Shown: positions 1-42,099 of the stretch, in pieces
Position numbering within the stretch: the first letter of the stretch is position 1
How the letters are laid out: each line of letters starts with the position of its first letter
Assembly (NCBI RefSeq): GCF_000143415.4
Contig: NW_003314407.1
Coordinates: 1 to 64,000 of the forward strand
Direction: 5' to 3'
DNA from: Selaginella moellendorffii
Taxonomy: Eukaryota > Plantae > Lycopodiophyta
Length of the DNA stretch: 64,000 bases
Translations under genes and position numbers: made by a program
Notes under the pieces: model-generated
Databases searched by the model: none
What the model was told of the DNA's origin: nothing
The model's input: the letters and a program-made list of their open reading frames with translations, nothing else

Positions 1-1998
1 AGCCTCACAACACCACAACAACACCCCACTCCACAAACGAACCCAACGCTATGGCTTGGGAAGAAACTTGCCTCCACAGCAACGCCCGCACTCTCCAGTT
101 ACGGCAGTGCCTGTGGACAGAAAAGGCAAGGCAAAAGTTTCTGGCTACCTTTGATTGCCCCGCATGAAGCTTTACTTCATTTTGCTGGCAATCAAAAAGT
201 TTCCCAGCTAGAAAATAGAGTGGAGATTGGTGCTGTTCACAATTTGTCTTCTCGCATGTTGAGTACCGCTGAAAAGCGCCTCCTTGCTCTTGGGCTCTCA
301 TTCATTCCTAATCCAGTGCCTCTCACGGCCAAAAAGATTATGGAATGCTTAGATGACTTTCAACGCTCAGTCCGTCTTCGTCATTCGTTTAAGGACAGCA
401 ACAGTCTTATACCAGAGTTTCGGGTTCCCAACCCAAACTTTGATCCTCCCCCTGCTTCCTGGCACATGGAGTCACGAGTTGCCTGCATTCGAGAGCACCT
501 TCTCCAACGTCTTTCCTGTTGTAAAAGACCTCGATCTTTTCTAAGAGGATGGAGACGTGATGCAGTCCTTGCACTGCGACACGATCATAGTATTGTGATT
601 AAGCCAGCTGACAAAAACCTCGGCGTAGTTGTTCTGGACCGCACGTGGTACATTCAAGAGGCTATGCGCCAACTCAATGATCCTCTTGTCTACAAGAGAG
701 TTGAGTCGATTCCACATCAACCCATGCATGAGCGCCTCCTCGAACTTCTCCTGAAGTATAAATCTTGCTCGTGGTTGGACAAGAACACAGCCAAGTACCT
801 CACCACTTTGCCCTCACCTCCACATAAAGCTTGTTTGTTGTATTTTCTTACAAAAATACACAAGCAGCCAATTCGTGGGAGACCAATTGCTAGCTATGTT
901 GGCTACATTTGGGAGCCACTTGCAAAATGGCTTCACCGCCAACTTTTTGGCATTCTCCTCCAACAGGAAACCTTTCTTATGGACTCCCACACCCTCCTTC
1001 ATGATCTTCATAAACAACAGCTCCCAAAAGACTGCCTCCTCTTCACTTTTGATGTGGATTCGCTCTACCCGAGCATTCCCACACGTGAAGGGCTCTATCG
1101 CCTCCATAAATTTGTATATAGAAATTTTGGAGATTCAATGCAAGCACGCTTTATCATGGCTGCTGCAGGACTCATCCTTGAACACAATTATGTTGAGTTC
1201 GATGGGAGTTATTTCCTTCAAATCCGAGGCACTGCTATGGGGTCAAACTTTGCTGTGGTGTATGCTTGCCTTTTTCTTTGTTCCCTCGAGGACGAGTTTA
1301 AGGCCACCTCTTCTAAATGGCCAATATATCTTAAGAGATATATTGACGATGGTGTCGGAATTTGGGATGGATCAAAAGAGAGCTTGGAATGCTGGTTGGC
1401 TAGCTATGGAAGCCTCTGCAATTCTATAAAGATCACCTCAGTGATCTCATTTGAATCTATGGATATTCTAGACATCCATTTTTTCAAAGGCCCACGCTTT
1501 GAGAAATGCAGGTGCCTAGACTCCACCACCTTTCAAAAGCCACTAAATGCATACCAATATCTTCCATGGAACTCAACGCATCCTCGACACCAAAAGATTG
1601 CCTTTATTCGTGCTGAACTTCGGCATTACCTCCTACGAGAGAGTAACCCTGAGAGCTTCTGTGCAATTCGCAAGCTTTTCTATACTCGTCTCCGTGCACG
1701 TGGATACCCAAGAGCCTTCCTTATTGAAGCTTTCCGGACAATCCATTATACGGACCGAGATAATGTGCTCTACTCTCCATCACGCAAATCCAGTAGCAAT
1801 AGTCTACAGGCCCCCCTCATTTTCAAGCTGCCTTATACTCTCCATAGTGCGGCACTTGATGTGGGGAACACCCTAAACCCTAAACAGGTGATTTCTGAAG
1901 TTCCATCAGACTCACTCCCCAGAGTGATCACATGCTGGACACGGTCCCCAAACCTTGCTTCCCACTTGGTTTCAGCGAGACTCCCACCATATGGATAA
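1..1998 (+). CDS. Penelope-like reverse transcriptase (no endonuclease); frame open from base 1, ORF track start 151
   Basis: Motifs IVIKPADKNLG, KIHK-PIRGRPI, FTFDVDSLYPSIP, QIRGTAMGS, RYIDDG, LDI, YLPWNSTHP; stop at 1996-1998 with no GIY-YIG motif; no stop in frame 1 from 1 to 150. Confidence 0.92.
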   Translation, partial: SLTTPQQHPTPQTNPTLWLGKKLASTATPALSSYGSACGQKRQGKSFWLPLIAPHEALLHFAGNQKVSQLENRVEIGAVHNLSSRMLSTAEKRLLALGLSFIPNPVPLTAKKIMECLDDFQRSVRLRHSFKDSNSLIPEFRVPNPNFDPPPASWHMESRVACIREHLLQRLSCCKRPRSFLRGWRRDAVLALRHDHSIVIKPADKNLGVVVLDRTWYIQEAMRQLNDPLVYKRVESIPHQPMHERLLELLLKYKSCSWLDKNTAKYLTTLPSPPHKACLLYFLTKIHKQPIRGRPIASYVGYIWEPLAKWLHRQLFGILLQQETFLMDSHTLLHDLHKQQLPKDCLLFTFDVDSLYPSIPTREGLYRLHKFVYRNFGDSMQARFIMAAAGLILEHNYVEFDGSYFLQIRGTAMGSNFAVVYACLFLCSLEDEFKATSSKWPIYLKRYIDDGVGIWDGSKESLECWLASYGSLCNSIKITSVISFESMDILDIHFFKGPRFEKCRCLDSTTFQKPLNAYQYLPWNSTHPRHQKIAFIRAELRHYLLRESNPESFCAIRKLFYTRLRARGYPRAFLIEAFRTIHYTDRDNVLYSPSRKSSSNSLQAPLIFKLPYTLHSAALDVGNTLNPKQVISEVPSDSLPRVITCWTRSPNLASHLVSARLPPYG

Positions 1999-2017
1999 GC
2001 TACCTTGGACTTGCCCA

Positions 2018-2342
2018 AAGCTACCTCTTGCAAACTCGGAGTGGAATATTCCTGGAATATTCTGATGCTTTGAAATATTTTTTTTGAGGTTAGCTATTAA
2101 ACATGATGAGGAACAATTAGGACGTGCTGCATGGCTGATATCCATCACCATCACCGTTCACAATATACTGCTGTGAATAAGCTACCTCTTGCAAAGTCGG
2201 AGTGGAATATTCCTGGAATATTCTGATGCTTTGAAATAACTTTTGAGGTTGGCTATTAAACATGATAAGGAACAATTAGGACGTGCTGCATGGCTGATAT
2301 CCATCACCATCACCGTTCACAATATACTGCTATGAATAAGCT
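2018..2342 (+). repeat. Tandem duplication, 2 x ~161 bp, in PLE 3' UTR
   Basis: Units start AAGCTACCTCTTGCAAA at 2018 and 2179 and are near-identical. Confidence 0.9.
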
Positions 2343-2812
2343 TCACACCACTAAGCTTGTTTATTTCCTATTTCAGTCTTTGAAATTTTCAACTTTTTTG
2401 AAATTTCAATTGATTATTATATCTTGTGCCTTGCACAGTGATGTCATTGAAGTTCACATCTATTCTCTACAAACCAAATTTGAGGGAAATATACTGAGCT
2501 AATTAAAATCACCACCACCTCTTCTCTGAAATTTTTCTGAAATTTCAAGGGACTATCACATCTTGTGCCTTGCACAAAGATGTCATTAAAACTCATATTT
2601 TATTTTCTACAAACCAAAATTTGTAGAAAATAAACTCATAATAATACCAATCAATACCACCATCATAATATATAAGATAAGTGGCTAGTGACAACCAAGT
2701 CTGTGAGGCTGTTCCTCCAAGCTTGCCTGCTCACACTCCACCACAAGATCTTTGAAATTCTAAAACAGTTGGATATTTTCAAAGCTTCTTGAATATTCTT
2801 AAGGCATCTGGG

Positions 2813-2820
2813 TATAAATA
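2813..2820 (+). promoter_or_regulatory. TATA box candidate in PLE terminal (pLTR-like) region
   Basis: TATAAATA about 30 nt upstream of the first base of hammerhead stem I (2852). Confidence 0.5.
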
Positions 2821-2851
2821 GAGGAAAAGAGGGGCTAGGTTAGACCATTTT

Positions 2852-2913
2852 CATGGCAACTACACCCGGCTGATGAGTCCCAAAAAGGACGAAACCAGTC
2901 TCGGGTTGTCATG
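2852..2913 (+). ncRNA. Type I hammerhead ribozyme (minimal stem III, PLE type)
   Basis: Stem I CATGGCAA..CCCGG / TCGGG.TTGTCATG; core CTGATGA 2870-2876; stem II GTCC-CAAAAA-GGAC; GAAAC-CA-GTC with predicted cleavage after C2900. Confidence 0.9.
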
Positions 2914-3067
2914 CCAATGTATTTCCTTTCCCTTTAGTGAATTTTTCATTATAAATTTTCTCTAGTTTTTCCTCTTATCTCAGATTGCCATAGCCGATCT
3001 CTAGCATTCTTGAGTTCCACTGGATCAAGCAATGTGGAGTGCTTTTGTCTAATCGCAATTCCAAAAT

Positions 3068-3164
3068 CCTAAACCCTAAACCCTAAACCCCTAAACCCTA
3101 AAACCGCGGGGTGTCTTTGACCCTAAACGCTTAAATGCGCCTAAAACCCTAAACCCTAAACCCT
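3068..3164 (-). repeat. Interstitial plant telomeric repeats (TTTAGGG)n split by a ~40 bp LINE 3'-end fragment
   Basis: CCCTAAA units at 3068-3103 and 3121-3164, with CCGCGGGGTGTCTTTGA between them. Confidence 0.9.
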
Positions 3165-4468
3165 CTACAGCACACCCACGAGTCTTGGGAGGACTTGGAG
3201 TTATCAATCCAAGTGACATGGCAAAGGCACTGTGGTATAAAATCCTCCTCATTAGTCTTCAACCAGGTAACTAACCTTGGAGACTCATGTTCAGGCAAAG
3301 CTTGTTGGCAATCCGGCCTAGGCACAACACTACAAGACCATGGGAGGAGGATCCACGTTGGCTTTTTGTTGAAGGGCCAAAGCAAGTAGTCAAGGGTGGC
3401 ACATTGGTTCAAGGGTTCCTTAGGCTATGGAGTGAGTTTCCAATCAGTAGGGAAATGCCGGGGCAAGTGGAGGACTGGCTGAACCAGCCTCTATTCTTCA
3501 ACAACCTCTTCAAAGTGGATGACAGGACGTTGGGCAAGGAAGACCACTACACAATCTAGAGAAAGCTGCATGGCGAAGGCTTTCGAACTCTCAAGCAACT
3601 GGTGGGAGTTCTGGACAAGGATAGGAGGAAGACTACGAGGTGAATGTCCTTTAACCCAGGACGGTGGAGGAAAGTCCACCTTGATCTTCTTCGCATCATC
3701 AGAGCGGTGAGTGAGGTGAAGAAGGGGCAGCTCTGGCCTAGGTGCTATCTCAAACCTGGAGACTTTGTGGCTTGCAACGGGATGTGGAGCCAGGCAAGGA
3801 ATGAGTCAGCTTGGGGGCCTGGACACGGGCGTTTACGGCACCTACACCAACTTGGGAGGACAGCGACGTGGAGGTGTGGTTCATTGTGTCTCCCGAACAG
3901 AATGTCGGGCGTCCTTTTCAGGTTACGAGAGGTGATATGCTGCTGCCAATAGGAGACGAACAGGCCATGCCAATGGTGATGGACGACGAAGTCAAGGGTA
4001 GGATTCGAGTGGTACGACAGGCTTCGAGGCAGGTGGTGGTAGTTCAAGCGATGGCCACACTAGAGGGGGATGGCATTCTCAAATGGTGGCAACAGCAACT
4101 CATTGAGGATCTGGATTGGGACCCAGCAATATGGAAATGAGGAGTAAAGAGCTTCTTCTCATTTGAAGTCAAGGAAGCACAGGATGGTCTCTTGACCAGC
4201 AGGGAGGAGGCCCGAGGGGAGATCCCTAAGCTCTGGAAGAAATGGATGGAGCAAGGAGTCGAAGCAAATCAGGTGGTGGACAACACGCTAGCGTTCTAGA
4301 AACTACCGGTACAGGAGAAAGTCAAGGCCACCTCTTGGTTGGTGGCAAATAATGGGCTGCTAATAGGACAGCGGTTCCAAGAGGAAGCATGTTGACGATG
4401 CTTCCTCTTGGCAAGCTAGAGACGGCGCGACATGTACTTTGGAGATGTGACGTGGCGAGAAAGGTATG

Positions 4469-6427
4469 TGTGAGACACAAAATCCCTAGGCCCCAAAGTG
4501 GAGCTGGAAGGGCGCCACATGGTAGTGGCCGAAGCGAGAGCCAAACGAGCGTAACACGTTTGGACCAAAAGCTCCGACTTGAAAAGTCAAGAGCGGGAGT
4601 GGAACTCCCAACGAAGTGCTCGAAGAACGAGCACGAAGCGAGCAAAAGGCGAGGCTCCAAAAAGGGACCCAAAAGGGCCAACACATGACACGTAGGAGTC
4701 CGAGATAGACCCGAGTTGGAGTCCGAAGTGGAGTCCGAGATGGACCCGAGTTGGAGTCCGAAGTGGAGTCCGAGATGGACCCGAGTTGGAGTCCGAAGTG
4801 GAGTCCGAGATGGACCCGAGTTGGAGTCCGAAGTGGAGTCCGAGATGGACCCGAGATGGAGTCCGAGAAGGAGTCCGAAGTGGAGTCCGAGGTGGACCGG
4901 AGATGGACCCGAGAAGGAGTCCGAAGTGGAGTCCGAGGTGGACCGGAGATGGACCCGAGTTGGAGTCCGAAGTGGAGTCCGAGATGGACCCGAGATGGAG
5001 TCCGAGATGGAGTCCGAGATGGAGTCCGAGGTGGACCCGAGATGGAGTCCGAGAAGGAGTCAGAAGTGGAGTCCGAGGTGGACCCGAGATGGACCCGAGT
5101 TGGAGTCCGAAGTGGAGTCCGAGATGGACCCGAGATGGAGTCCGAGATGGAGTCCGAGGTGGACCCGAGATGGACCCGAAATGGAGTCCGAGATGGAGTC
5201 CGAGATGGACCCGAGATGGAGTCCGAGATGGAGTCTGAGATGGAGTCCGAGATGGAGTCCGAGATGGAGTCCGAAGTCGAGACCGAGACCGGGACCAAGA
5301 CCGAGACCGAGACCAAGACCGAGATCGGGACCGAGACCGAGACTGAGGCCGAGGCCGAGACCGAGCCCGAGCCCGAGTCCGAGTCCGAGTCCGAGTCCGA
5401 GTCCGAGTCCGAGTCCGAGTCCGGAGCCTGAGAGGGTGAAAGCCCAAAGCGTTCGTCTCCCAGACCCTGGGGGGTTTGGTGAGCTCCAAAAGTATAGTAG
5501 GGGGAGGACTGCAGTGGAGCCAGTTTGGCCAGGAAAGGCCAGTTTGGCCCAGGAAGGCCGGACCCAGTGTTGGGTGATGAGCTGCCCACTGGGAAGTCCA
5601 AGACTAGAGTGAACACGGACCGACAAGCGGGGTAGCTTGGTGAAGTGTTCAAGAGCCGGCTCTAGTTCCCCCGGGAGATCGACTGGCCGATGCTCCCAGT
5701 CCAAGTGTGGGTGGCACTACCTACTTGGATACCAGGCGTGGCTCAACGGAACCTCGCTCTAAGCCCATGGCTAGAGCACCTAAGGGCAGAAGGCGAGGAG
5801 AGTACCCAGGTGGCTCGCGTAAGGCCACGGTGTTCCGAAATGTTGCCCCAAAGGCCCAGACCATGGAAAGGAAGAGGAGCAGTCCTCTGGGGTAGTGACC
5901 AAGGACACAATCGTGTGGTGAGGAAGTCCCAGAGGACCGTGGGACTTAGTGGTCGGGCCTGTGGGTCTCGATCAAGTGGCAGTGTTGGCAAACACGGCCA
6001 AGGGCAGAAAGGGACTTAGTGGGGATTGACAGAGGGATATTGGGGAAGGCTATTCCCCTTGTCGGTGGGCATCCTAAGGGTGCTAAGGAGTGGATCTCAG
6101 GTGACCACTCACGGATGGTTTGCCTAGTCTTGGAGAGCCAAGACTGTGATGCAAGTGGTAATGGACTACCAGTGTGGCAAAGGTGATTGGGCATGGCCTT
6201 AGCGTAACGGGCTGGCATGTCGGTGGTACCTTTGAGTGTCGGTCATGGGATCAGACACGTGGAGCACTTGGACCAAGTGCAAATGTTGAGTGGCATAGAT
6301 GCCATTCTCGGGGCTAGCAAGTCCCAAGTCCTGGATTGGACTTATGGAGGTTGTGAATGAGACTCCTCCAAGCGGTCGGAGGTGTGGTTAAGTGACTAAA
6401 GTAGAATGGAAAATTTAGTTGCGTACA
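4469..6427 (+). repeat. 5' LTR of large element (1959 bp)
   Basis: TGTGAGACAC...GCGTACA followed by PBS. Confidence 0.93.
4694..5422 (+). repeat. LTR minisatellite: 11/12-bp GATGGA(C/GT)CCGA units, 35-bp higher-order unit, then (GAGACC)n and (GAGTCC)n
   Basis: Directly visible; also at ~10801-11559, 28725-28960, 41385-41680 (minus), 52348-52862 and 61385-61778. Confidence 0.95.
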
Positions 6428-8904
6428 ATTTGGTATCGGAGCTGTTCCTTAGTCCGACTTTTATTGGTGCTCAAGTATATCACCACTGGTGTTGGCAACG
6501 GAAGGTCCGAGAAGTGGGCCTATCCTTGAGGAGTAGCAGGTCGGGAAGACATAGCTCTCCATTACAGTTCATGTGTGAACTTGTAGACAAGGTGGTGGAT
6601 AGAAAAGGGGCCAATAATGGAACGACTTTGGGATCTTGGGAACAGTGCAAGGTTTTCCTCATTGAGTTGAGGAGGTGATCCAGATGAGCGTTTGACTCAG
6701 CAAACGGGCTAATGTAGTTGGGGTAAACAACTATAGTTGGGATCACGGGGAAGATAGAGACTCCAAAAAACAATAAAGGAGTCACAAGTTTATCCTCACA
6801 TGGTTGAGGCTGGTGCTCATGAAGATGAGACCGGAATGGATGACCGTGAGAGGTCAAGTATGGATGAGGACACGAGTCCTCGAAATGGTAGCCGGGGCTA
6901 CCTCTAATAAATGCTGGAACAACCCAAGGAGTTAGGGGTGTATTAAGTGGATGAGTTGGTATTCTCATCACATGGACAAGTAGTCCTAAGGGGCAAAGGT
7001 TGCCCCCAGAGAACAAAATCAAGTGTCGGAGTAACACTTGTGAAAATAGTCCTTTTGAGTAGGACAGGAATGCAAGAAGTGTATTCCAGTGAGCTAGTGC
7101 CTCACAAGTAGGACCTTACGGGTTTGTGGATTAACCAAGTCCAAAACTGCTAGACGACTCAAGTAGAGTCAAGGGATGGTCCTAAAAGGACTGATGGAAA
7201 CATTTGGACTGAGGTGCGTTGTACCCCACAAAGGATGGGGGGGGATCATAGGATCCAAGGATGAGAACAGAGAGTATCTCATCGATGGCAAAATGTGCCA
7301 TGCTAAAGTCGTGGGAAAGGTGTTCCCAAAAAAAGAAAACAACTTTGACGCAAAGTTGTGTGTGACCTCTATGATGCAGTGCTAACGGATGGTTGGCATG
7401 AGAAAGAGCGGTGTTGGTCTTGGCAAAGACATAAACACGAAGGGGAAGTGTCATAGAGGTAGGCTCGTGGAGCCGATGGTGTAGAGACACCAAATGTGCC
7501 AAGGTGTGATACCTTGAGGCTATGTTGGTGGGTTCATGAGAACCCCTTGCCAAAGGAATCCCAATGGAAATGGGAATGGCATAGCCTAAGCTGCAGAGCA
7601 TGCAGTTGGAGTGTGGTGACCCAGATAATGATGAAGGTGTGAAAGCACCAAACAATGAGTTGTAGGACTTGACAACTATGAGGCAACTAAGCAAGAGGTG
7701 CAAAATAACTGGTTGAACGGGTAGAAGGTAGCTACCCAAGACTTCTTAATAGCATAGGGAAGTCGGATACGCCCTTACGGGGGATAAGTTGCTTGTGTTG
7801 CGATATAGTAAGTCAATGTCATAAAAGGAAATACTCATTGTCAAGAAAGCCATCATTGGGACACCCGAACACTCTAGAACACCAGAAGGTGGTGTTTGAT
7901 GTCGCGAGGGCAATGGATAAAGCCCAAGGGACTAAGTCCCTAGCGAATGATGGATAGAAGGTGCTATCCTAATGTCCAAGGTTGCGGAGACAGGAGAGGA
8001 CTGTCTACCCGAGTTGGACAAAGCCAAAAATGGAATTTTGGCAAGGCTAGTGATGGGCATGGAAAGGCCCATAAGCAACAATGTAATCCCAGTGTGTGGG
8101 ATTATAAGTTGAGCATGCCCGGATTGAGGAACCACTCCCTGGGCTATTGGGTAGGTTCATCCCTAAGAATACTTGCTAAGGCATGATAGAAAGTGCAAAG
8201 CTATCCTCCTGATCTGGAGGAGAATGACCGAAGGAAAGGTGTGAAGCCAAAGGCAAGTAGTATTGGGATAGAACTGAACCATAGAAATCGAAGGGCATAA
8301 TCAAGGTTGGTTATGCCAGCTGGGAGTGGGGAATCAAGTGGGGGCTCGAGGGTGTTGCCGCTAGCAACCGTGATGCCATGGAGAGTCTAAAATATGGAAT
8401 TATCCATGTTAGACTATGTGGCATTTGGAAGGCTTGCAAAAGGGAGGCCTTAGCAAGCTGAGGGACAGAGTTCCTTCAAGGTTCCCAAAGACGATTCTAG
8501 GTAGCTTAGTACCTAGAAAGGCCAAGTGTAAATGGTTCATGGAACGCGCAAAATCAGAGTGGCGCAGCAGAAGCGTGGTCTTGAAGTTTGCCATGAGGCA
8601 AGGCTATCAAGGTTAGGGAAGTAGTTCCCGAGTGTTCAAAGAGAGGGCTTTGAACGAAAGTCGATGGTCAAGGACTTTCACGCTTATGCAGGAACCATGT
8701 TACAGTGGTCGGAGAACTTGCCAAGCGAGATTGGCACGTCGGGGGAACAAATACCCTAGTTGAAGGTGATAACTTCAAAAAGGGTGGGCCATGGGGCCGA
8801 GCATGGAGGAGTCCATGCATGATCACAGACATGTCAAATGAGAGGACTTGGCAGTGTGGAGGAACTAGGTTCCTAAGCTGTGATCTGTAGCGCGCTTTAA
8901 AAAT

Positions 8905-9333
8905 AAGTTGGTGCACCGGCGTGGGGAGTCACGCCAGGCATCTTGTGTGATGCCGTCCGTAGATGCATATACGGAGGTTGGGTTCAAGTCCCGACCCTCT
9001 AGTGCTTGGGTTCGAGTCCCAAATCACTAGGGCGTGGTGATGGTTTGGAATATGAGGACACTCATATTTCGGTGGTCATGGACTCTCAGTGGGGAGACTG
9101 GTTTGGGCACACCGCCAAGCGAGGGATGCCTCGGAGTCGTGATGCACGGTTAGATTGCTTAGTGTGAAAGCTCAGCATATCTAACTTGAACGCTTTGGTG
9201 CAAGTGGCACCAAGGTCGTGGTGAGTGAGATGGGGACACCTAATCTCAGTTGCTATGAACCCTTGGCCGTAAGGGCTGGCTTGGGTGCACCGCCAAGTGT
9301 GGGGGATGCCCCCGGGGTTATAGTCAACAACTT
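8905..9333 (+). ncRNA. Candidate structured cis-acting RNA domain (hairpin array) in large-element interior
   Basis: About 15 consecutive short hairpins; same-length second copy at 50522-50950, where the differences checked fall in loops or keep pairing. Confidence 0.6.
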
Positions 9334-10575
9334 GGAGGTCTAGAAGACCAAGTACCTCTTGGCAACTCTGTTAAGGTGCCAAGGTGAGATCACTAGGTGA
9401 TCTTATGGCCAGATAAGGACAAGGTCCTTGGTTGGCTAAGGAATGAAGTTCCTGGTTCAAAATGTTGAAATTGAACTGTTTAAGGTGGTGTGGCTTGGTC
9501 GTGATGACCAAGTGGGAAGAGCACCTAAGGGAAATAAACTATGTCCGTGCGATGGCATAGTGAGTCCGAGGAAAGTAGTCTCTATAAGAGACCCATGGGA
9601 GGGTCACGAAGTTGGGCCGTGGATAGAGCCCATAGCAGAAGATGCTAAAGAGACATACTAGGGGTGAACATCCTCCGGACTTGGCAAAAAAGAGTCTTTG
9701 CTATGGAACCGAAACAATACCTCAAGGAGGGAGGTAGAGATTCGATGTTGCTTGGTGCAACAATCAACGGATAGGAGCAAAAGATAAGTGGCCAAGATAG
9801 GGCCGTGGAATCCCTTGGAAGGAATCCAAGTGACAAATTTAGGCGAGGAACACTAATGTGTTGGACGCTAACAAGTTGCGGGAAAGGAAGTGTGTTTCCA
9901 AGGAGGGATTCCGAAATGCTCCGATTTGGCGAAAGTGGAAGCTCCAAGGGAGGGAGCGGTAAGGTAGCCAAATGATAGGGCCATGAACAGCCCTAGCACA
10001 AAGTATGATAACTGGAACTTTGGCACGAAATAGAAGAGAGGATGATGGTGCCCTCGAGTAGAGAACTTCCTAGGATGGGAAGTGGAGTTGCACAAAAAGG
10101 TGCAAGGCAAGGTGTCGGAGACACCTAGGAAATTGACTCCAAGAAGTCAAAATTCAAAGTTCCAAAGTGCAAAGGTTATATCGATGGAAATCAAGACTAC
10201 TCGAGAAGGAGTAGTGGGATTGACTTAGAGAAGGGTCTCTAAGAGGTTTAGCGAGGACTAAACCAATAAAAGGAGAGAACCACTACATGTGGTCCAATCC
10301 GTCTCTAAGTTGGAGAGACTACCCTCCTTAGAGGATAGGCAAGGCATGGTGAGCCTTTGGTGTCAAACCATGGAGGCATATGCAAAAGGCATGGTGAGCC
10401 TTCAATGTCAAACCATTGACGAATATGGAGAAGGCATGGTGAGCCTTCAATGTCAAACCATTGACAAATATTGGCTAGGTGCCAAGGATGGAAATGGTAA
10501 CACACGCGAGTGTTACTTTACAAAATGGTTTACCGTTCGATGAGGACATCGAACTTCGTCTATGGGTGGTGGAGT

Positions 10576-12564
10576 TGTGAGACACAAAATCCCTAGGCCC
10601 CAAAGTGGAGCTGGAAGGGCGCCACATGGTAGTGGCCGAAGCGAGAGCCAAACGAGCGTAACACATTTGGACCAAAAGCTCCGACTTGAAAAGTCAAGAG
10701 CGGGAGTGGAACTCCCAACGAAGTGCTCGAAGAACGAGCACGAAGCGAGCAAAAGGCGAGGCTCCAAAAAGGGACCCAAAAGGGCCAACACATGACACGT
10801 AGGAGTCCGAGATAGACCCGAGTTGGAGTCCGAAGTGGAGTCCGAGATGGACCCGAGTTGGAGTCCGAAGTGGAGTCCGAGATGGACCCGAGTTGGAGTC
10901 CGAAGTGGAGTCCGAGATGGACCCGAGTTGGAGTCCGAAGTGGAGTCCGAGATGGACCCGAGATGGAGTCCGAGAAGGAGTCCGAAGTGGAGTCCGAGGT
11001 GGACCGGAGATGGACCCGAGAAGGAGTCCGAAGTGGAGTCCGAGGTGGACCGGAGATGGACCCGAGTTGGAGTCCGAAGTGGAGTCCGAGATGGACCCGA
11101 GATGGAGTCCGAGATGGAGTCCGAGATGGAGTCCGAGGTGGACCCGAGATGGAGTCCGAGAAGGAGTCCGAAGTGGAGTCCGAGGTGGACCCGAGATGGA
11201 CCCGAGTTGGAGTCCGAAGTGGAGTCCGAGATGGACCCGAGATGGAGTCCGAGATGGAGTCCGAGATGGAGTCCGAGGTGGACCCGAGATGGACCCGAAA
11301 TGGAGTCCGAGATGGAGTCCAAGATGGACCCGAGATGGAGTCCGAGATGGAGTCTGAGATGGAGTCCGAGATGGAGTCCGAGATGGAGTCCGAAGTCGAG
11401 ACCGAGACCGGGACCAAGACCGAGACCAAGACCAAGACCGAGATCGGGACCGAGACCGAGACTGAGGCCGAGGCCGAGACCGAGCCCGAGCCCGAGTCCG
11501 AGTCCGAGTCCGAGTCCGAGTCCGAGTCCGAGTCCGAGTCCGAGTCCGAGTCCGAGTCCGGAGCCTGAGAGGGTGAAAGCCCAAAGCGTTCGTCTCCCAG
11601 ACCCTAGGGGGTTTGGTGAGCTCCAAAAGTATAGTAGAGGGAGGACTGCAGTGGAGCCAGTTTGGCCAGGAAAGGCCAGTTTGGCCCAGGAAGGCCGGAC
11701 CCAGTGTTGGGTGATGAGCTGCCCACTGGGAAGTCCAAGACTAGAGTGAACACGGACCGACAAGCGGGGTAGCTTGGTGAAGTGTTCAAGAGCCGGCTCT
11801 AGTTTCCCCGGGAGATCGACTGGCCGATGCTCCCAGTCCAAGTGTGGGTGGCACTACCTACTTGGATACCAGGCGTGGCTCAACGGAACCTCGCTCTAAG
11901 CCCATGGCTAGAGCACCTAAGGGCAGAAGGCGAGGAGAGTACCCAGGTGGCTTGCGTAAGGCCACGGTGTTCCGAAATGTTGCCCCAAAGGCCCAGACCA
12001 TGGAAAGGAAGAGGAGCAGTCCTCTGGGGTAGTGACCAAGGACACAATCGTGTGGTGAGGAAGTCCCAGAGGACCGTGGGACTTAGTGGTCGGGCCTGTG
12101 GGTCTCGATCAAGTGGCAGTGTTGGCAAACACGGCCAGGGGCAGAAAGGGACTTAGTGGGGATTGACAGAGGGATATTGGGGAAGGCTATTCCCCTTGTC
12201 GGTGGGCATCCTAAGGGTGCTAAGGAGTGGATCTCAGGTGACCACTCACGGATGGTTTGCCTAGTCTTGGAGAGCCAAGACTGTGATGCAAGTGGTAATG
12301 GACTACCAGTGTGGCAAAGGTGATTGGGCATGGCCTTAGCGTAACGGGCTGGCATGTCGGTGGTACCTTTGAGTGTCGGTCATGGGATCAGACACGTGGA
12401 GCACTTGGACCAAGTGCAAATGTTGAGTGGCATAGATGCCATTCTCGGGGCTAGCAAGTCCCAAGTCCTGGATTGGACTTATGGAGGTTGTGAATGAGAC
12501 TCCTCCAAGCGGTCGGAGGTGTGGTTAAGTGACTAAAGTAGAATGGAAAATTTAGTTGCGTACA
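10576..12564 (+). repeat. 3' LTR of large element (1989 bp)
   Basis: Near-identical to 4469-6427; 30 bp longer through repeat-unit gain. Confidence 0.93.
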
Positions 12565-13282
12565 GTATGGCGACAGATCTTCAAGGCGACGCAGGAACTA
12601 GGAGACATTCCAGAGTTCAAGGCTCGGAGTGGGGATATCCTCCACTGGTTTGAGGGAGCTAGAGGTCCAGCCATTGGTCCATCTTGGAGGCGTATTCGCT
12701 GTTATGGACAACATGGATGGAACATGCGAGTCCGATGGGATGCATTAGGGGCTGAAGTCGGGATGTCAGTCTGGGAGGCAATGGGCCACAAGCGATGGTC
12801 CATCTAGAGGGCGACTGGAGTGCAGGCACTCTAGGAGGCAGGGAACCATTGCTGCTTTGATGGGCAACAAGCAAGGATATCAGGGGTGGTGGCATCATGG
12901 TGGAGACTCACTCTTGCAGCGGTGCGGCTTCATTACACCATCCTGAAGGAGCGGGTGAAACCAAGGCAGCTAGAGGAGTGGCAGTCCAGGTGGCTCCCAT
13001 GCTTCGGCAGATTGGTAGGTGGTGAGATTCGCTGGCAATGGCGCCCCCCAGACTCTGTTCTATGTTCAACTCGTGGGGGAGACTTGGACATCGACATGAT
13101 TTGATCAAGACAACCATGTCCACTTCTACTCCAGGACTAGGTCCCACTGTGACACAAGAGGATCACGTAGAGCAGCTCATTGAGAGGGCGGCACACCCAG
13201 TTTTTGTATTAGTCCCATTGGGACATGGGGAATGTACATACATGTTCAGCAATCTCACCGGATACCGCAGGGTGTCTTTGAT

Positions 13283-13329
13283 CCTAAACGCCTAAACACA
13301 CCTAAACCCTAAACCCTAAACCTAAACCC
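13283..13329 (-). repeat. Interstitial telomeric repeats at LINE 3' end / segment breakpoint
   Basis: CCTAAACG CCTAAACACA CCTAAA CCCTAAA CCCTAAA CCTAAACCC. Confidence 0.85.
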
Positions 13330-15184
13330 GTATGACACTTTTTTTTCTTGCTTTGTATGGAGGTTTTTGTCCCTGGCTCGTCCATGCATTATTGCTTGCA
13401 ACCTTGCTCCAAAGTTCACATCTAACCCTCTTCTATGGTGGTTCATCATCATCTTCTTCTTCTTTTCATGATGAGGAAAGACTCTTGTCTTGAATTTCAT
13501 CACTTGTCACTTTTTGTCTCACTATTATCCTCTTCATTATCATTGTGTTGTACCTTGTCTTCATTGTCCTCACTCTCCTAATCATTGGACGTTGATGTTA
13601 ATGAGGATGTATCGCTTAATGTATATTTATCATCAACAACCTAATCAACCTTATGTCTGTAGTTGGAGAGGTCATGGAATGGATGCTCCAATTCTTCTAT
13701 TTCCCTCTGATCAAAAAGTCTCTTAGTTAGAATCCTATTGTTGACTGTCCACAACAGCAATGCCCTTGACAAGGTTAGTCTGTCCTTGAGGATTCCATAA
13801 GCAGTGAAGGTTGTATCAATTCCTTCTCTGCAAACTGTATTGTAGTTGACAGAATAAACTCTAAGTTTCCTAATGAATGTCTTTTGAAGCTCTATATAAA
13901 TGGCCCTCCTTCCCTATTCATGTCTTTGTTAGGAATGTCCTCTTCTTTGATGACAATCCTATAGACTAATGGACTGTTTGGGTTGGTAAGATCCACCAAC
14001 ACTAGATCATCATCTTGTATCTCTAATGTCCACTTTTGTGGTTGTGTGGAGTTGCAGCCTCTTTTCACTCTGATGGACTCATATAGAAGTGTTTTAGATT
14101 GCTGGGCCGAGAAACATGAAAGAACTTATTAGAATTACTCAAAATATTTTTGAAATGGGAGAGAATGGATCCTAGTGTGAGGCCTCATGCTAAGTGAAAG
14201 GGGTAATGGAAGTAATTCTATAGGAGGTTAATAGCATGAGAACTCAAGAATGGATGGGGTGTATGAAAGGGGTAGTGGAGGTAATTCTATAGGAGGTTAT
14301 TAGCATAAAGCCTCACACTTAGAAATGGATGGGATGTGTTTGCCAATTCCTTGATAATAATATTACTTGTCCCATGGACAGATGTTCAAGCAAGATTACC
14401 ATCGAGAAACTAGACAAACCAAAATCTTTTTAGCACTTTAGCATAGCATGCTAATCCTTAAGCATGAGTCCAGTCACAATGTGCTGATGGAGATTACTAG
14501 CATGAAGCCTCACACTTAGATTGCTTGTGATATTTTTCCCAGTTTCTTAATGACAATCTTATTCACTTATGCAATAAACATGCATGCAAAGGAGATTGGT
14601 GTCGAGAAACTAGGCTAGAGGAGGTGGGTGGGCTTTTTTTCTTGGTGTGAGGCCTCACACTAATGTTTTTGTGTGAGGTTGGACACCATCCATTTGTAGA
14701 TTGGATTAAGGTATTATGGAGGGATGAAGTCATTTTCTTGGCATGAGGCCTCATGCTATTCATTTGTATGCATTTGTTTCTTACTACTTTAGGTGTCTAG
14801 GTGAGTAATCTTACTCGCCAATTCATCTTTGGGGTAAATGTTCAAACAAGATTGCTCCCCAAACACTTGCAAGACTGGGGAAACAGTGGAAGGTTGTACG
14901 TTTAGATGTTTGCTTAGCCATTGCCATATTTGTAGTGTCATTTTTATTCCACTTTAAGGTTCACAAGTTACACACTTTATTTCTATTCCTATCTATAGTG
15001 CCTAAGGAAACTGTTTGAAGGCAGCTAGGAAAAGCTCTTTGCAATGCGTTGGCTCACTAGAATGAACAAACCAAGCTAGGGGATCCTAGAAGTGCTACCT
15101 TAGAAGGATGCCATCGAGAATTTCCCTAATCTCTCCCTTCTCTCTAATCTCGTGAGAGGCTAGCTTTGGTGTTGAGCGAAACTG

Positions 15185-15603
15185 ATGCTGTCCAAGTCCG
15201 AGTGTGTGGATCTCATCACTTCTGCGACCAATTCCTCACAGGCGATCGATGCCCATTCCCGGATCGAGATCGCCCAGAAGCAAATGCTGCCTGGCGATTG
15301 CTGCTACCTCTCCAATCTCGTCATCCTTCGGTATGGCAAGCTGGGCAAGATCCAGCGCGCGCGAGCAGTGTTTGACTCCATGGAGCGATGCGATTGCCAC
15401 TTGTGGGTCATTATGTTCTTGGCACACGCCCAAGAAGGGCATCTCGCCACTACCAAGGATCGAGGCAAGGTTACTGCTGCATGGTGGATTTCTTGGGGCA
15501 AGCTGGGTGTGTGGAAGAGGCCGAGGAACTTGTGAGGAGCATGCCTTACAAGCCAGTTTCAGTGGATTGGATGTGCTTGCTGGGAGCAAAGTCTAGAAAT
15601 TGA
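15185..15603 (+). pseudogene. PLS-class pentatricopeptide repeat fragment (copy A)
   Basis: YGKLGKIQRARAVFDSM and YCCMVD.LG.AG.VEEAEELVRSMPYKP..VDW.CLLGA lie in different frames. Confidence 0.8.
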
Positions 15604-15849
15604 GGACAAAGATCTCATGGTGTTGTGCTAGAACAAGCTTTAAGTGTAGATTCTAGGAATTCTACTAGCAAATAGTAGCAATTTTGTTTGAAACTAGTGT
15701 GAGTGTAGATTCTGTGTCCTCGTGATTAAAGAGGGTATTCTTTGACAGATCATCATGTATGATTAAAGAAAAAATTCTTTGCTCATTTCCAATATAGTCC
15801 AAAAGCTGGCTCCTGTACTTTACCAAGCATAAATTTAGGGTTCTTGGAG

Positions 15850-16902
15850 GTCAGTGTCGCAGTGATGGCACAGGGCTGCGCGGCAATCTCCAGTGCAGGC
15901 GGCTATGGCAGGAGCTCAGCGGCTCGCTGGGCGACCTGGGCACATTCATCCCGATCGTCATGGCTGTAGCTCTCGTCAATGGCATGGATCTTGGTCTCTC
16001 ATTGCCACGGGCATCTACAACGTTCTCACCAGCGTGCTCTTTGGCGTGCCAATGCCTGTCCAGCCCATGAAATCCATCGCGGCGGTGGCCTTCACCGAAT
16101 CCAAGCATCTCAGTGTGGATGAGATCATGGCCGCGGGGATCACTGTGTCTGTGATCGTGTTTGTGCTTGGAACCACGGGCTTGATCACGGGTCGTGGCTT
16201 GGATCGTGCCATTGCCGGTGGTTCGTGGCATCCAGCTTGCGCATGGGCTCTTTCGCGGTCAAGGCTGTCAAGTACGTGATGAAGGATCAAAATCTCTCTA
16301 GGGACAAGGCAATGGGTGATCGACCATGGCTGGGCTTGGATGGAATTCTCCTCGCAGTGATTTGCTTCGCATTCATCGTGCTGGTGAATGGATCTGGCGA
16401 GGGCTACGAGTACTTCGTGACGAACAGTGAAGGTGATCGTCATCACGATGATCATGAAGAGCACCGTGAAGAACATCAAGCGAGATCGTCAAAGCTCGTG
16501 AAGTTTTTCCAGAGGATCCCGACTGCCTTGGCAGTGTTCGTGCTCGGGATCATCCTGGCGTTCGTGAGGAGGCCACACATTCTCAAGGAGCTCCAGTTTG
16601 GCCCGGCCACGCCACGGATCACTCGAATCTCTTTCCACGACTGGAAGACGGTTTGTGAGAGCCGCCATCCCGCAGCTCCCTCTCACTATCCTCAACTCGG
16701 TGGTGGCGGTTTGCAAGCTCTCGAGCGATCTCTTCCCGGCCAAGAAGGACTCCGTGACTCCGACCAAAGTCTCGGTGAGCGTGGGGCTCATGAACTTGGT
16801 GGGCTGCTGGTTTGGAGCTCTCCCGGTTTGCCATGGCGCTGGAGGACTGGCCGGGCAGTATCGTTTCGGAGCCACGAGTGGGGTAGCGGTGGCAAGCTTG
16901 TG
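15850..16902 (+). pseudogene. Molybdate transporter (MOT1/SULTR5-like) pseudogene, copy A, start deleted, frameshifted, 3' truncated
   Basis: GDLGTFIPIV, GVPMPVQPMKSIAAVA, AIPQLPLTILNSVVAVCKLS and CWFGALPVCHGAGGLAGQYRFG spread across frames. Confidence 0.88.
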
Positions 16903-17299
16903 TTGACCCGGTTTATGGTCTCGGCCATCAAAGGGGAGAGTGTAGATTCGTTGGCAATGAAGTCTTTTGAGTTTTTGTACTTCGAGAAAAGCTTCATGAA
17001 TGAAGTTAGCTCCGTATTGAGCTACGTACTCCGAACTTGAGTCTTCATTCTTTAGATCCATTGGTTAGCTCCGTTTTGAGCTATATGCTTCGTTTAAGCT
17101 CATGGATATTAAGGGTCTAGAGGGGCATTCTCCTAGAGGGGAGAATGTTACGATCCTTAAGAGCCTGGGGGTGGTTTACTATATATAGTGACCTATGGTA
17201 GGGTGGTTTAGGCTTTTGCTCCCTTGTTTGTTACAGCCAGAGCCACAATCCACCCCCGCCAACTCTTTGCTCCATCTGCAAGAACTATTTGCCACCTCT

Positions 17300-18962
17300 A
17301 AATACTTCAATCTGAAGAAAACTGTATATATACCCAATGGAGCGGGTTTGTGGTGTCTTCACTCGCGGGTTTGACAGCTGAGGTGTTGCAGATCAACAAA
17401 GCTTGAAGTTTATACCGAGCGGAGTGAAGTCTATGCTCGCACAACCTTTTGTGGATAACAGCGGAGGCATGCTGGTGGTTTCTCACTATCCAAGAGGATA
17501 TAACAACATCAAGCATAGAACCTGGGTGCAGTGCATCGCCGATAAGATTGCAGCTGTTTTCTGAATGTATTTTTCATTTCAACGATTATAAGTCAGTCTC
17601 CGGACTCTCCATCCAGAAAACATCTTCTGAATTTTGCTCGCGTAAGACTGTGATGTTGAAGTGTGAAATCATCAGCCACATCAAGCTCCTGTGAAATCAT
17701 CAGCCACATCGGCTGTCTGCACGAATCACAGACGTCAGAAAAATCTGAAGATTGCGAGCACTTCAGTACCTATAGTAAGTGATGCAATGCGCATAACAGT
17801 TCCATGTCTTGTTCCAACGCTGTACTTTCAGTTTCTTTTGCTGACAGCCAAGACAGTCCTGCTTGAAGCGCTGTTCGCAGGCCATAGCTGAGGAGCACTT
17901 GACTCCTTCCTCAACAGCAAAACGCATTTCAGACATTGCAAAAACAAGAAAAACAAGTACCTGAAACAGATGACTCCCTTATCGTAAAGCTTCGGAGTCT
18001 CAACAGCACTGCAATCTCGACAAGTAAAGCCAACAGCCAGCGGGAATGCCACTTACCGGACTCTCTCGAGTCGGACTGCATAATTCAGGTCCGAGCAGTG
18101 AAGGCAAACTTTCACCCATGAGATATAACGCTGCCAGAGGTCACGCAGCACCTTCCAGATTTTCATCCCAGTGACTCCGTCATCCAAACACACACCTTCC
18201 AGGTCGTACAGATTCAATCTGCCGTGAAGCTTTGGCAGAAGTGAGGCAGATAGGAAATCTGCACGATTCGCAAAAGCGGAGCTTAGCACTTCCATAGAAT
18301 ACGCACCAGTCGCGCAGCGTAAGCTCTCGTATAAGAGGACACAGCTTAGAGGAGCTGTAAATCCTGTGTTCCCACCATGCATCCAAGGCTTGAATCAGAA
18401 ACGTGTATCTGTTCGTGAAATATAAAACGCGAGTGCTTCGAGACGACAGTAGCGTGCTGTGCTTATGCACCAGCCATCTGCAAAATTCAACGTTTAAGCA
18501 AGGAAAACAAAATTTCCAGAAAATAGTATAGTCAGGAGGCACGTACCTTGGTAAGTTGGCTTGACTTGAGCCGACGAATTTCTCCCACAGACAGTCTGAT
18601 GAACACAGAGCGTACCAGTGCTTGCAAACTTGTCTTGATGAAGATAAGTCTCTCGCCATCATTGACATAAAGACACCTCGTCTGGGATAGAGGAGATTGG
18701 ACTCTGGTTGGAGCTCCCAGTTGCGCCCAGTCGAGTTTGTGCGAGTGTTGCACAGACTCGTCCTTGAGCTTTTTTTCTTCTGGAGTGTGTAAAGAAAGCC
18801 ACAAGAGTGACCACAGAGCCCGCCGCTTCTGATCCTGGTGAATTTCAACAAACGAAAATGTGATGCCCGGACTCGGGATCTCTTTCTCAGGAACTCCCCG
18901 AGGATTGCATTCCTTACCGCTGCTCGCATCCGACTTTCTCCCACTTGCCAGTCACGGACCAT
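17300..18962 (-). pseudogene. F-box-like gene remnant
   Basis: RQVCKHWYALCSSDCLWEKF resembles the C-terminal half of an F-box; frames are fragmented and boundaries uncertain. Confidence 0.4.
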
Positions 18963-19049: not shown

Positions 19050-22000
19050 AGAGACGTAGAACAAAAGAAAGAATACCAGATGAATTCCATCAGCAGCAGT
19101 GTTGGTGACCCAGACTCGGTACGTTTTACCTCCATTCCTGCATAAGGAGTGAACGATTTGAACAGACTTGTCAAGCAACGGCTTCGTTTCTTCACTTCGA
19201 GCGTTGGAACCCGTTTCATTAGAGCCGCCGGTGTTCCTGTCTAAGGATAAACACTATTGACAGGATAAACACTAGTGACAGTGAAAACCATTCAGCAGCA
19301 TGTACAGAGATCACCTACCTGGTCGAGGGTAAAACTGTGATATGTGGACCTGTGGGAACGTGTACTCTCGTATTAGTTCCATGATCCTGTCAAAATCCTC
19401 TGATGTTTCTCCTGACAAGGATAAAAGCTCAATAAGATACAATCTTTTTCATGCATGCGAGTGTACCTGGAAATCCACAGATAATATCTGTAGCGATATG
19501 AATCTCCGGGACTAGTTTTTCTAAACTCGGCAAACGTGTACTCCCTCTTCCCCTGAAGAACACAGAAAACGGCTTATAGAGACAAAACAATCACCCAGAA
19601 CATTGGTACCTCCAACACCGAGTCCCTTCCAGATTGAACCAGAACATGAAGGAACGAATACACGCAAGGGTGACAGCCATTTCCTCCAGATGCTGTAAGA
19701 TGTAGATTCGGAGCATTGTACTTCTGTCTATGAGGAAGCGCGGCAACTAAAGCATGTAGAAGCGCTGGTATATTTGCTCCAATGTATGTTAATTCCCATT
19801 AACATAGAAAAACTCTCGTCCTGTAGTGCAAAGAAAGAAATAAATAAATAAAAAATGCTAGCTTGAAACAGATAACCATAACCGTAAGCTCTGAGACAAA
19901 TTGGGATCAAAGCACACCGCGCTAGCGGACAGAACAGGAAAACCCTAATGGACATGTAGTGAGGTGTGTCATGTAACACTCCCCCCAAAACCGAAGCCAC
20001 TCACCAAACCAAATCTGTTGCGTAGGAGCTGAAACTGGTGTGGCCCCAATGGCTTGGTGAGAAGATTGGCTAGCATGTCATATGTCCTGAGATGTTAGAT
20101 GGCCAAGGTGCCACCATCAACCAACTCATGCATGTAGTGAAATTGGACTTCAATGTGCTTCAAGCGGGCATGGTGGGCGGGGTTCTTGGACATGGCAATG
20201 CTGCTTCGGTTGCCATACCAAGAAGTAGTGGGGCCAGCTTATGCACATCCCAGCTCAGCAAGTAACCCTTGAGCCCAGACCACGTCCCTGCTACCAGTAG
20301 TGAGTGCGATGTACTCTGCTTCTGCACTAGAAAGGGCCACTACAGATTGTCACTTGGAGGCCCACATGATGGCACCTCCTGAGAAGGAAAGGCAAATGCC
20401 AGAAGTTGAGCAATGACCTTTGTTGTTGGCAAAACTAGCATCTGCGTAGCATGCCAATTAAGCATCACCCCCTGAATAAGCAATGCCGTAGTCCATAGTG
20501 CCCCGGAGGTATCTTATGATACGCTTGGCAGCTTGCCAATGTATGGTGGTTGGTGATGTGTTGTACTGACTCAAAGCAATAGTCGCATATGTGGGGCGAG
20601 TCATCAGGGCCAAATATGTGAGGCAACCAATGAGATGCCGATAGGGAGTCCTAGTGGGTAGAGGCTCACCAGACTGCTCAACTGTGAGGTCGATAGCACC
20701 AATGACCATCAAGGTCTTGACGGGGTGGCAATCACACATACCACACCAATCCAGCAAGACTTTGACTTTACGTCATTGGCTAAGCATATAGCCACCAGAC
20801 TCAGGATCACGTGTGACTTCAAAGCCAAGAAAGTAGGAGACTTGGCCAAGGTCCTTCATCTAGAATTGCTGGCTGAGAGCAGCTTTCAAAGCAGCAAGGG
20901 CATCGGTGTCATCACCCATGATGAGCAAATCATCAACGTAGAGGGCCACAATAAGCATGTGCTCAGCATGACCATTCACATACACATTGTGATCAGCATG
21001 ACAGCGACGAAAGCCTTGAGCGCGTAGGGTGGCATCAAATTTTTGATACCAAATATGGGAGCTCTATTTAGGCCATACAAAGCTTTCTGCAATTGCCATA
21101 TAGGGCCACTAGGGGCAACATTGTCCTCAAAAACAGGAGGTATATGCATATAGATGTCCTCTTGCAAATCCCCATTCAAAAATGCAGTTTTGACATCCAT
21201 ATGGTGGACTTGCCATTTGCGAGCAGCCGCAAGTGCAAAAAGAGTACGGAGGTTGGCCATTTTTACAACCAGTGAGAATGTTTCATTGTAGTCAAGGCCA
21301 TGGACTTGGCGAAAACCGCGAACAACCAACCGTGCCTTAACCTGACCATCTTTCCCATACTTTTTGGAAAAATTCACTTTGGATCCAAAACACATCGTCC
21401 CAATGGCGCTGAATCAACTGGAACATAAGTTCCGTTAACCCGAATGGAAAAAACTTCTTCCGCAATAGCTTCCATCCAAGATGAAGCCTCAGGTCTTGAG
21501 ATGGCCTCATCACAGGTCATGGGGATGCTGATGTCAACAAGGCCACAAAAGTCATCAAGCTCTGCAGCATCTGCTTCAGCATTTTCTTGGACTTTCAACG
21601 AGGGCCGACGTTCCCGAGGGTGATCAAGAACTGGCATCGGATCAGGCATGCCACGAAGTTGACAAGGTGGTGGAGGTGTCGGAGGCCTGTCCTCGACTGG
21701 AGGAGCATCAGCTGGTTCAAACATGTCCAGAAGTGGAGGATTCCCCAATGGAATCTCTAGTGGCAGCTCATGAATAGGATCTTGAGGCGGAGGCAAGAGT
21801 GGACCATCTCCCATAAGTGGGATCAAAGGAACAAGTCGAGTCTCAACAATGAAAGATAGATCTTGAAGAGCCTTTATACGCATGAGAAAGTCGTCTTTAT
21901 TGAACATGATATCTGTGCTTACAAGAGCTTTGTGAGATGCAAGATCCCACAACTTGTAAGCTTTTCTCCCGATGGTGTCGTCCTGTGCATATCCCACGAA

Positions 22001-32397: not shown

Positions 32398-32816
32398 ATG
32401 CTGTCCAAGTCCGAGTGTGTGGATCTCATCACTTCTGCGACCAATTCCTCACAGGCGATCGATGCCCATTCCCGGATCGAGATCGCCCAGAAGCAAATGC
32501 TGCCTGGCGATTGCTGCTACCTCTCCAATCTCGTCATCCTTCGGTATGGCAAGCTGGGCAAGATCCAGCGCGCGCGAGCAGTGTTTGACTCCATGGAGCG
32601 ATGCGATTGCCACTTGTGGGTCATTATGTTCTTGGCACACGCCCAAGAAGGGCATCTCGCCACTACCAAGGATCGAGGCAAGGTTACTGCTGCATGGTGG
32701 ATTGCTTGGGGCGAGCTGGGTATGTGGAAGAGGCCGAGGAACTTGTGAGGAGCATGCCTTACAAGCCAGTTTCAGTGGATTGGATGTGCTTGCTGGGAGC
32801 AAAGTCTAGAAATTGA
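32398..32816 (+). pseudogene. PPR fragment (copy B)
   Basis: Near-identical to 15185-15603. Confidence 0.8.
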
Positions 32817-33065
32817 GGACAAAGATCTCATGGTGTTGTGCTAGAACAAGCTTTAAGTGTAGATTCTAGGAATTCTACTAGCAAATAGTAGCAATTTTGT
32901 TTGAAACTAGTGTGAGTGTAGATTCTGTGTCCTCGTGATTAAAGAGGGTATTCTTTGACAGATCATCATGTATGATTAAAGAGAAAATTCTTTGCTCATT
33001 TCCAATGGTCGCTTGGTAAAGTACAGGAGCCAGCTTTTGGACTATATAAATTTAGGTTCTTGGAG

Positions 33066-41905: not shown

Positions 41906-42099
41906 CCTACAACTCCTTTATGATCTCAAAATCTCTATGTTTCCCATTATTATATTTCCCACTCTTATTAGCCTCTTTTTATCCACCACATTGCATACAT
42001 GTTCATATACAAACTCAAGTGGAGAGTCATGCCTTCTTGACATGCTACTTCTCAAGGATAGACTCAATCTTGGGACCTTCCGATGCTGATATCAAGTGG

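Follow-up and report, generated by a model that had tools for sequence, protein, structure and literature searches.

How the left 13 kb of this stretch of DNA came to be built is the question that the locus raises. The window, by which we mean the whole 64,000-nucleotide stretch analyzed here, belongs to contig NW_003314407.1 of Selaginella moellendorffii (assembly GCF_000143415.4). Its left 13 kb form a stack, in which a Penelope-like element (PLE) without an endonuclease, a stub of a long interspersed nuclear element (LINE) and a broken LINE are joined via short tracts of telomeric repeat. A first-pass annotation had described the region as a layered record of chromosome-end growth, with a healed break, then a LINE and then a PLE. 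We consider it probable that the region is a fossil stack of terminal retrotranspositions, laid down at a former left chromosome end of S. moellendorffii or of a very close relative.

To delimit the telomeric tracts, we combined TRF with direct reading of the letters. Across the 64-kb window, CCCTAAACCCTAAA with at most one mismatch gave 7 matches against a chance expectation of 0.06, all of them on the + strand and confined to positions 1-13320. The results revealed three C-strand tracts of plant-type telomeric repeat on the + strand. The first, at the 3' end of the PLE (3064-3102), holds ~5.4 CCCTAAA units with an extra C at 3088. The second (3144-3164) separates the stub from the 5'-truncated LINE and holds 3 units, and the T at 3164 can be assigned to either the repeat or the LINE. 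The third, between the 3' end of the LINE and unique host DNA (13300-13329), holds ~4 units, one of which lacks a C (13321-13326). The tracts are 21-39 bp long (~90 bp summed over the three), and each multi-unit tract sits precisely at the 3' end of a retroelement, with three elements in one orientation on one strand, as the first-pass annotation had stated. Additionally, a perfect two-unit telomere-like 14-mer was found at 1871-1884 within the PLE open reading frame (ORF), where it encodes T-L-N-P-K. We rejected it as a functional telomeric tract because endonuclease-less relatives retain the LNP motif in their proteins; the resemblance to telomeric repeat probably arises by chance from the coding sequence.

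The distal element is an endonuclease-deficient PLE. Its ORF (1-1998, +) is cut by the window edge, comprises 666 open codons in frame 1 with the stop at 1996-1998, and encodes a reverse transcriptase (RT) without an endonuclease. Pfam gave a weak RVT_1 match for the ORF and no match to a GIY-YIG domain, and no ORF of at least 150 amino acids (aa) was present in the 3' region downstream of the stop. The translation was 98% identical to XP_024523476.1 of S. moellendorffii over 580 aa without gaps, and two more 580-aa proteins of the species showed 98-98.6% identity, so that the family counts 4 copies in S. moellendorffii at ≥98% identity, all with intact ORFs. More remote relatives (30-45% identity) included proteins of Cryptomeria, Ginkgo and Closterium as well as GIY-YIG-bearing ones, and proteins with both PF00078 and PF01541 were matched at E 1e-60 to 1e-70 with ~30% identity. 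In a 21-sequence alignment, the stop of the ORF coincided with the stops of the endonuclease-less relatives, whereas the endonuclease-bearing relatives ran 154-206 aa beyond it and carried CCHH/GIY-YIG there. The N-terminal block HNLS..L..E..L..GL.F.P aligned with GIY-YIG-bearing PLEs and lies upstream of the annotated Met, indicating that the PLE extends past the left edge of the window. A PDB sequence search with the ORF returned no match, and no second copy of the PLE was found in the window.

The 3' non-coding region of the PLE (1999-3063, +; 1.07 kb) resembles a pseudo-long terminal repeat (pLTR) and carries two tandem duplications and a hammerhead ribozyme (HHR). TRF and self-BLAST placed the duplications at 2018-2342 (a 159-bp unit, twice) and 2391-2661 (a unit of ~130 bp, twice). 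The ribozyme (2864-2906, +) is a canonical type I HHR and matched the full-length Rfam model RF00163 with a score of 40 bits (gathering score, 34); its fold z-score was -2.3, no other HHR was found in 1-3300 at E ≤ 1, and 158 nt separate it from the telomeric repeats. The GIY-YIG-bearing relatives, the N-terminal motif and the type I HHR support the PLE identity proposed at first pass. Each 159-bp unit also contains a doubled palindrome, TGGAATATTCC twice (2042-2062 and 2203-2223), whose GAAnnTTC pattern is that of a heat-shock-element half-site.

The other retroelement of the stack is an L1-like LINE, represented by the tail of its ORF2 with the zf-RVT region. An HMMER search with the translated piece 3805-4137 retrieved XP_024517766.1 of S. 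moellendorffii (here P0121) at E 3e-38. P0121 contains RVT_1 (residues 2-249) and zf-RVT (residues 567-632) and is itself N-terminally incomplete. In tblastn, its residues 339-361, 362-415 and 413-609 aligned to 3164-4401, the main piece with 65% identity at E 2e-80, and its residues 629-695 aligned to 12559-12759. Similarly, P0125 and P0137, two independent LINE ORF2 proteins that bear an APE endonuclease, matched 3176-3538. At ~40% identity, the relatives of P0121 are L1-like ORF2 proteins of plant, fern and algal LINEs, many of them with the APE endonuclease PF03372. A second HMMER match, P0122, was discarded as a 4685-aa repetitive protein with unrelated domains. The LINE copy begins ~90 residues past the RT domain and is therefore 5'-truncated. 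Its first part (3164-4468, +), delimited by tblastn of P0121, covers the post-RT portion of ORF2 up to the zf-RVT motif and is decayed: stops at 3272, 3557, 4138 and 4297 interrupt the frame, which also shifts at least twice. Its remainder (12565-13299, +) comprises the end of ORF2, the 3' untranslated region and a terminal block. Because of the frameshifts, the nine stop-free pieces of the LINE matched no Pfam family; a word search with a 94-aa piece gave no candidate. Separately, a second LINE fragment lies at 58698-59117 (-), corresponds to the APE region of ORF2 (P0133/P0137) and is not related to the terminal stack.

The two parts of the LINE are separated by a nested non-coding long terminal repeat (LTR) retrotransposon of 8.1 kb (4469-12564, +), a later insertion that stands outside the record of end growth. 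Its LTRs (4469-6427 and 10576-12564) differ by 9 mismatches in 1959 bases (99.5% identity), and the element is young. It has TG..CA ends, an iMet-type primer-binding site (ATTTGGTATCGGAGC) and a purine-rich tract preceding the 3' LTR; its internal pieces gave no Pfam match. The 5-bp target duplication GTATG flanks it at 4464-4468 and 12565-12569, and excision of the element together with one copy of the duplication makes the LINE frame continuous across the zf-RVT motif. The first-pass description of a 5'-truncated LINE ending on telomeric repeats is thus upheld by the P0121 alignment, but most of the span assigned to that LINE is the LTR element, and the LINE sequence itself totals only ~2 kb.

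The 3' end of the LINE reads ..CCTAAACGCCTAAACACACCTAAA(CCCTAAA)n, with no A-run and no poly(A) tail. Its terminal block, ACCGCAGGGTGTCTTTGATCCTAAACGCCTAAACAC, includes degenerate telomere-like units (13264-13299) and is followed by ACCTAAA, two perfect units, CCTAAA and CCC, after which host DNA begins at 13330. The stub (3103-3143, +) is a 41-bp sequence of the same kind as this terminus with extreme 5' truncation, in which a diverged form of the block is followed by CCTAAAA, two perfect units and CCC(T). The stub region (3103-3162) was 88% identical to the LINE end (13264-13322) over 60 bp, which bears out the LINE 3' stub of ~40 bp noted earlier. In addition, GGGTGTCTTTGAYCCTAAACGC was found only in the stub and at 13270-13291, with 0 occurrences expected by chance, and the window contained no further copy of the LINE 3' end beyond these two. 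The two ends have in common a terminal block of 36-41 nt plus 2-3 perfect units, and their tails are near-equal in length. This sharing suggests that the repeats may derive from the RNA tails of the elements, and the telomere-like block would then be a property of the LINE RNA, as judged from two copies. The folds of the two RNA ends were no better than those of shuffled sequences, and no conserved hairpin was found in them. A metagenome scan for the block gave a single match on a GC-rich, bacterial-looking contig (L001) without telomeric repeats, which we set aside as chance. No target-site duplication of the LINE was found, in line with the terminal origin proposed at first pass; its truncated 5' end abuts telomeric repeats and not a copy of the flank at 13330.

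Proximal to the stack lies segment A (13330-16905, +), a partial derived copy of the locus B, with fragments of PPR and MOT1 genes and 98.1% identity to 30532-34110 (67 mismatches in 3540 aligned bases, 53 of the 67, or ~79%, being transitions). The homology begins exactly at 13330, which corresponds to 30532 in B, while B continues upstream for 586 bp that have no counterpart in A, up to an LTR fragment; the abrupt start of A described earlier is confirmed by this comparison. Copy B matched PPR and MFS_MOT1 (molybdate transporter) and represents host DNA. The right edge of A at 16905 is also abrupt, falls within the MOT1 domain and carries no telomeric repeats. Positions 2-75 of the MOT1 model precede this edge and positions 76-111 follow it in B, with no continuation in A. 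Because B carries the MOT1 continuation past the right edge of A, A is the derived, partial copy of a B-like locus, and the reverse case, B as a copy of an already terminal A, was rejected on the same ground. A third, older partial PPR/MOT1 copy lies at 56943-58565 (~91% identity), and three copies of differing extent and age are typical of patchwork duplication of a subtelomere-like kind.

At the junction 13329/13330, C-strand repeats oriented as at a left chromosome end adjoin unique DNA. This agrees with the telomerase-healed break proposed at first pass insofar as the repeats are correctly oriented and sit on unique DNA, but the break itself is less secure than had been supposed. Segment A ends abruptly on both sides, on the right without repeats, so an abrupt edge alone is no proof of a break, and the left edge could be either the original edge of the copy or a later break. 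As the repeats number only ~4 units and run into the telomere-like block of the LINE, capture of the end at 13330 by a LINE would be just as possible as healing by telomerase.

We propose the following course of events. It would have started from a DNA end at 13330, at the edge of the partial copy of the PPR/MOT1 locus. The RNA of an L1-like LINE, whose 3' end ..CCTAAACGCCTAAACACACCTAAA(CCCTAAA)n is telomere-complementary, would have been reverse-transcribed from the 3'-OH of that DNA end, and an early stop would have left the 5'-truncated copy. A second LINE event with near-immediate termination would have produced the 41-bp stub. The endonuclease-deficient PLE would have come next, its (CCCUAAA)n tail pairing with the G-rich 3' end so that the RT extended the chromosome, as published for PLEs of this kind. 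Insertion of the LTR retrotransposon into the LINE would have followed much later.

Several observations argue for this course. The truncated 5' end of each older element is preceded by a short C-strand tract, to which the 3' end of the next, more distal element is joined, and all joints have one polarity, which makes random interstitial insertion very unlikely; such a pattern is expected of reverse transcription primed repeatedly from a chromosomal 3' end. Priming would accordingly have taken place on a free chromosome end, and the proximal layers would be the older ones. The gradient of decay fits younger distal layers, the PLE ORF being intact and the LINE full of stops. The PLE has no endonuclease and requires a free end, so end attachment would apply to the last layer at least. 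The stack may also be terminal today. Telomerase may have acted between the layers; the tracts could also come from the 3' tails of the elements themselves, and their lengths are compatible with such templating. The alternation of terminal retrotransposition and telomerase action read from this region at first pass is therefore supported in its order, polarity and junctions and not in its telomerase steps, given tracts of 21-39 bp that the tails may have templated.

Other findings weigh against this account. The window starts inside the PLE and contains neither a terminal array nor a contig end. The telomeres of S. moellendorffii measure 1.5-5.5 kb (PMC3400083), and the tracts, at 21-39 bp, are far shorter, so that attachment to very short or absent telomeres, or later shrinkage of the tracts, is needed. 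The LINE, with at least 4 stops and 2 frameshifts in ~1.3 kb, is more decayed than the 1.9% divergence between A and B predicts if it was added after the duplication; the excess may reflect a defective template RNA or faster, methylation-driven transitions. The argument from the LINE 3' end draws on two ends (n=2), and many relatives of the LINE (~40% identity) have an APE endonuclease, so the family may insert by nicking rather than by attachment to an end.

The explanation that best survives beside the one we favor is that the stack arose at a chromosome end and now lies inside the chromosome, where the duplication of subtelomeric segments, continued addition at the terminus or a fusion of two ends would have placed it. 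The mosaic of segmental duplications, in which the PPR/MOT1 fragment occurs three times, the many LTR elements, and the interstitial bands of telomeric DNA seen in S. moellendorffii (PMC3400083) all agree with it, as do the lack of a long terminal array in the window and the time that was evidently sufficient for an LTR element to insert into the LINE. The most distal element, however, has an intact ORF and at least 98% identity to other copies, which suggests a recent addition, and the window holds nothing direct on the sequence to the left of base 1. We regard an internal position today as possible, if on the doubtful side.

A second explanation places the insertions in a pre-existing telomeric array, either a true telomere that had formed at 13330 or a short array inside the chromosome, into which a repeat-specific endonuclease would have delivered the LINE and the stub in the manner of TRAS/SART, leaving only the PLE as an end-attached element. 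LINEs specific for telomeric repeats do exist elsewhere (PMC10088271, PMC7265360), the wider lineage of the present LINE has an APE endonuclease (PF03372 in many P0121 relatives), and both LINE and stub have telomeric repeats on either side. Against this stand the ~90 bp that the tracts total, since every insertion would have to hit a very short array, and the 3' end of the LINE, which lacks poly(A) and has a telomere-like block built into it that is common to two independent copies; the PLE, being without an endonuclease, needs a free end for the last layer at least. We judge this explanation unlikely. An assembly artefact, in which a PLE contig, LINE reads and segment A were joined via short telomeric repeats, is very improbable: the joints are indeed short low-complexity repeats and the elements multicopy, but each joint tract is distinct and has its own variants (the extra C at 3088, the C lacking at 13321-13326), the stub has diverged from the LINE end (88% identity) and is a copy in its own right, the polarity is consistent throughout, and the LTR insertion has a clean target duplication.

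We next set terminal retrotransposition beside known systems. Endonuclease-deficient PLEs attached to telomeres have been described as carrying an HHR and reverse-complement telomeric repeats close to their 3' end (PMC8557442); S. moellendorffii is the plant example named for them (PMC12477314), and its PLEs carry canonical type I HHRs (PMC4209133). The telomeric, endonuclease-deficient PLEs of the Athena/Coprina type go back to Gladyshev and Arkhipova (2007), as related in PMC8557442 and PMC12477314. The PLE in the window resembles them in its RT ORF without GIY-YIG, the HHR near its 3' end, the reverse-complement telomeric repeats and the inward-facing 3' end, and differs in nothing essential; their HHR lies directly beside the repeats, whereas here it lies 158 nt upstream. 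The PLE layer is thus a re-discovery of a known family in a known host. The layered architecture, by analogy with Athena/Coprina and HeT-A/TART, likewise corresponds to a known hallmark of terminal retroelements.

The LINE layers compare with several systems, each in part. HeT-A/TART/TAHRE of Drosophila are also added head to tail as LINEs with 3' ends facing the centromere and with variable 5' truncation, but they have poly(A) ends and no telomerase repeats, whereas the stack stands in a genome with TTTAGGG telomeres and has telomere-complementary tails. TRAS/SART of Bombyx and Zepp of Chlorella (PMC10088271) are, like the present LINE, embedded between telomeric repeats; TRAS/SART belong to the R1 clade, nick specific sequences by APE and carry poly(A), whereas the LINE here is L1-like (zf-RVT), has no poly(A) and ends in telomere-like 3' units. 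The endonuclease-independent L1 insertions of mammals, from a 2007 study as summarized in PMC4700185, share with it cDNA primed from a free end, the lack of a target-site duplication and 5' truncation; according to that summary, they are experimental, occur in repair-deficient cells and are poly(A)-tailed, whereas here a natural germline event with a telomere-like tail would be at hand. De novo telomere addition likewise joins correctly oriented repeats to unique DNA, as at 13329/13330 with the homologue B continuing for 586 bp, but here there are only ~4 units, which run into the telomere-like block of the LINE, and the tail of the stub is nearly equal in length.

The remainder of the window is rich in elements of the same LTR family as the nested one, none with recognisable coding capacity. 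They occupy 48060-53859 and 61384-64000, with fragments at 28157-29946, 36650-37102 (-) and 41194-44014 (-), and account for a large share of the window; their ~2-kb LTRs contain ~50 copies of the 12-mer GGAGTCCGAGAT and show a strong G/A strand bias. Small Cassandra-like terminal-repeat elements were found at 44659-45240, 59833-60434, 47871-48075 and 53872-54027 (-). Their LTRs of ~200 bp contain 5S-rRNA-like sequence (Rfam 5S_rRNA, 38.6 bits at 47976-48063), and the LTR ends adjoin an iMet-type primer-binding site that they share with the large LTR family. At 48060 and 53859 these elements stand directly against parts of the large elements, and the direct contacts suggest recombination via the common primer-binding site.

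Between A and B, an F-box ORF and Ty1/copia integrase fragments (gag_pre-integrs, SH3_retrovirus) were found at 18180-18962 (-) and 21374-23122 (-). An intact, ATG-initiated ORF of 664 aa at 25023-27017 (+) contains a coding tandem repeat of 42 bp (25243-25377); no Pfam family reached threshold for it, the sole match being a weak one to Mg_chelatase/AAA. ARAGORN found no tRNA genes in the window.

The participation of the LINE, which occurs twice in the stack in the same orientation and with a telomere-like 3' end, is possibly the only new detail of this locus. Elements associated with telomeres are rare in plants according to a recent review, which mentions no others than the PLE of Selaginella and an LTR element of subtelomeres (PMC12477314). 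The endonuclease-deficient PLE of S. moellendorffii is the single textbook example, and the telomere-associated LINEs listed for Viridiplantae consist only of Zepp of Chlorella (PMC10088271). An L1-like LINE of a lycophyte with a telomere-complementary 3' end would be new if a family-wide survey bore it out. We put forward only tentatively that there is in a vascular plant a lineage of L1-like LINEs in which such an end replaces poly(A) and which attaches directly to chromosome ends or breaks, as endonuclease-deficient PLEs do. If true, broken chromosome ends of Selaginella can be capped by a LINE instead of by telomerase. If the telomere-complementary end characterizes the LINE family as a whole, two unrelated classes of retroelement would have converged on pairing with the G-overhang in one genome, and such a LINE would be the counterpart in nature of the L1 insertions that occur without an endonuclease at damaged mammalian telomeres.

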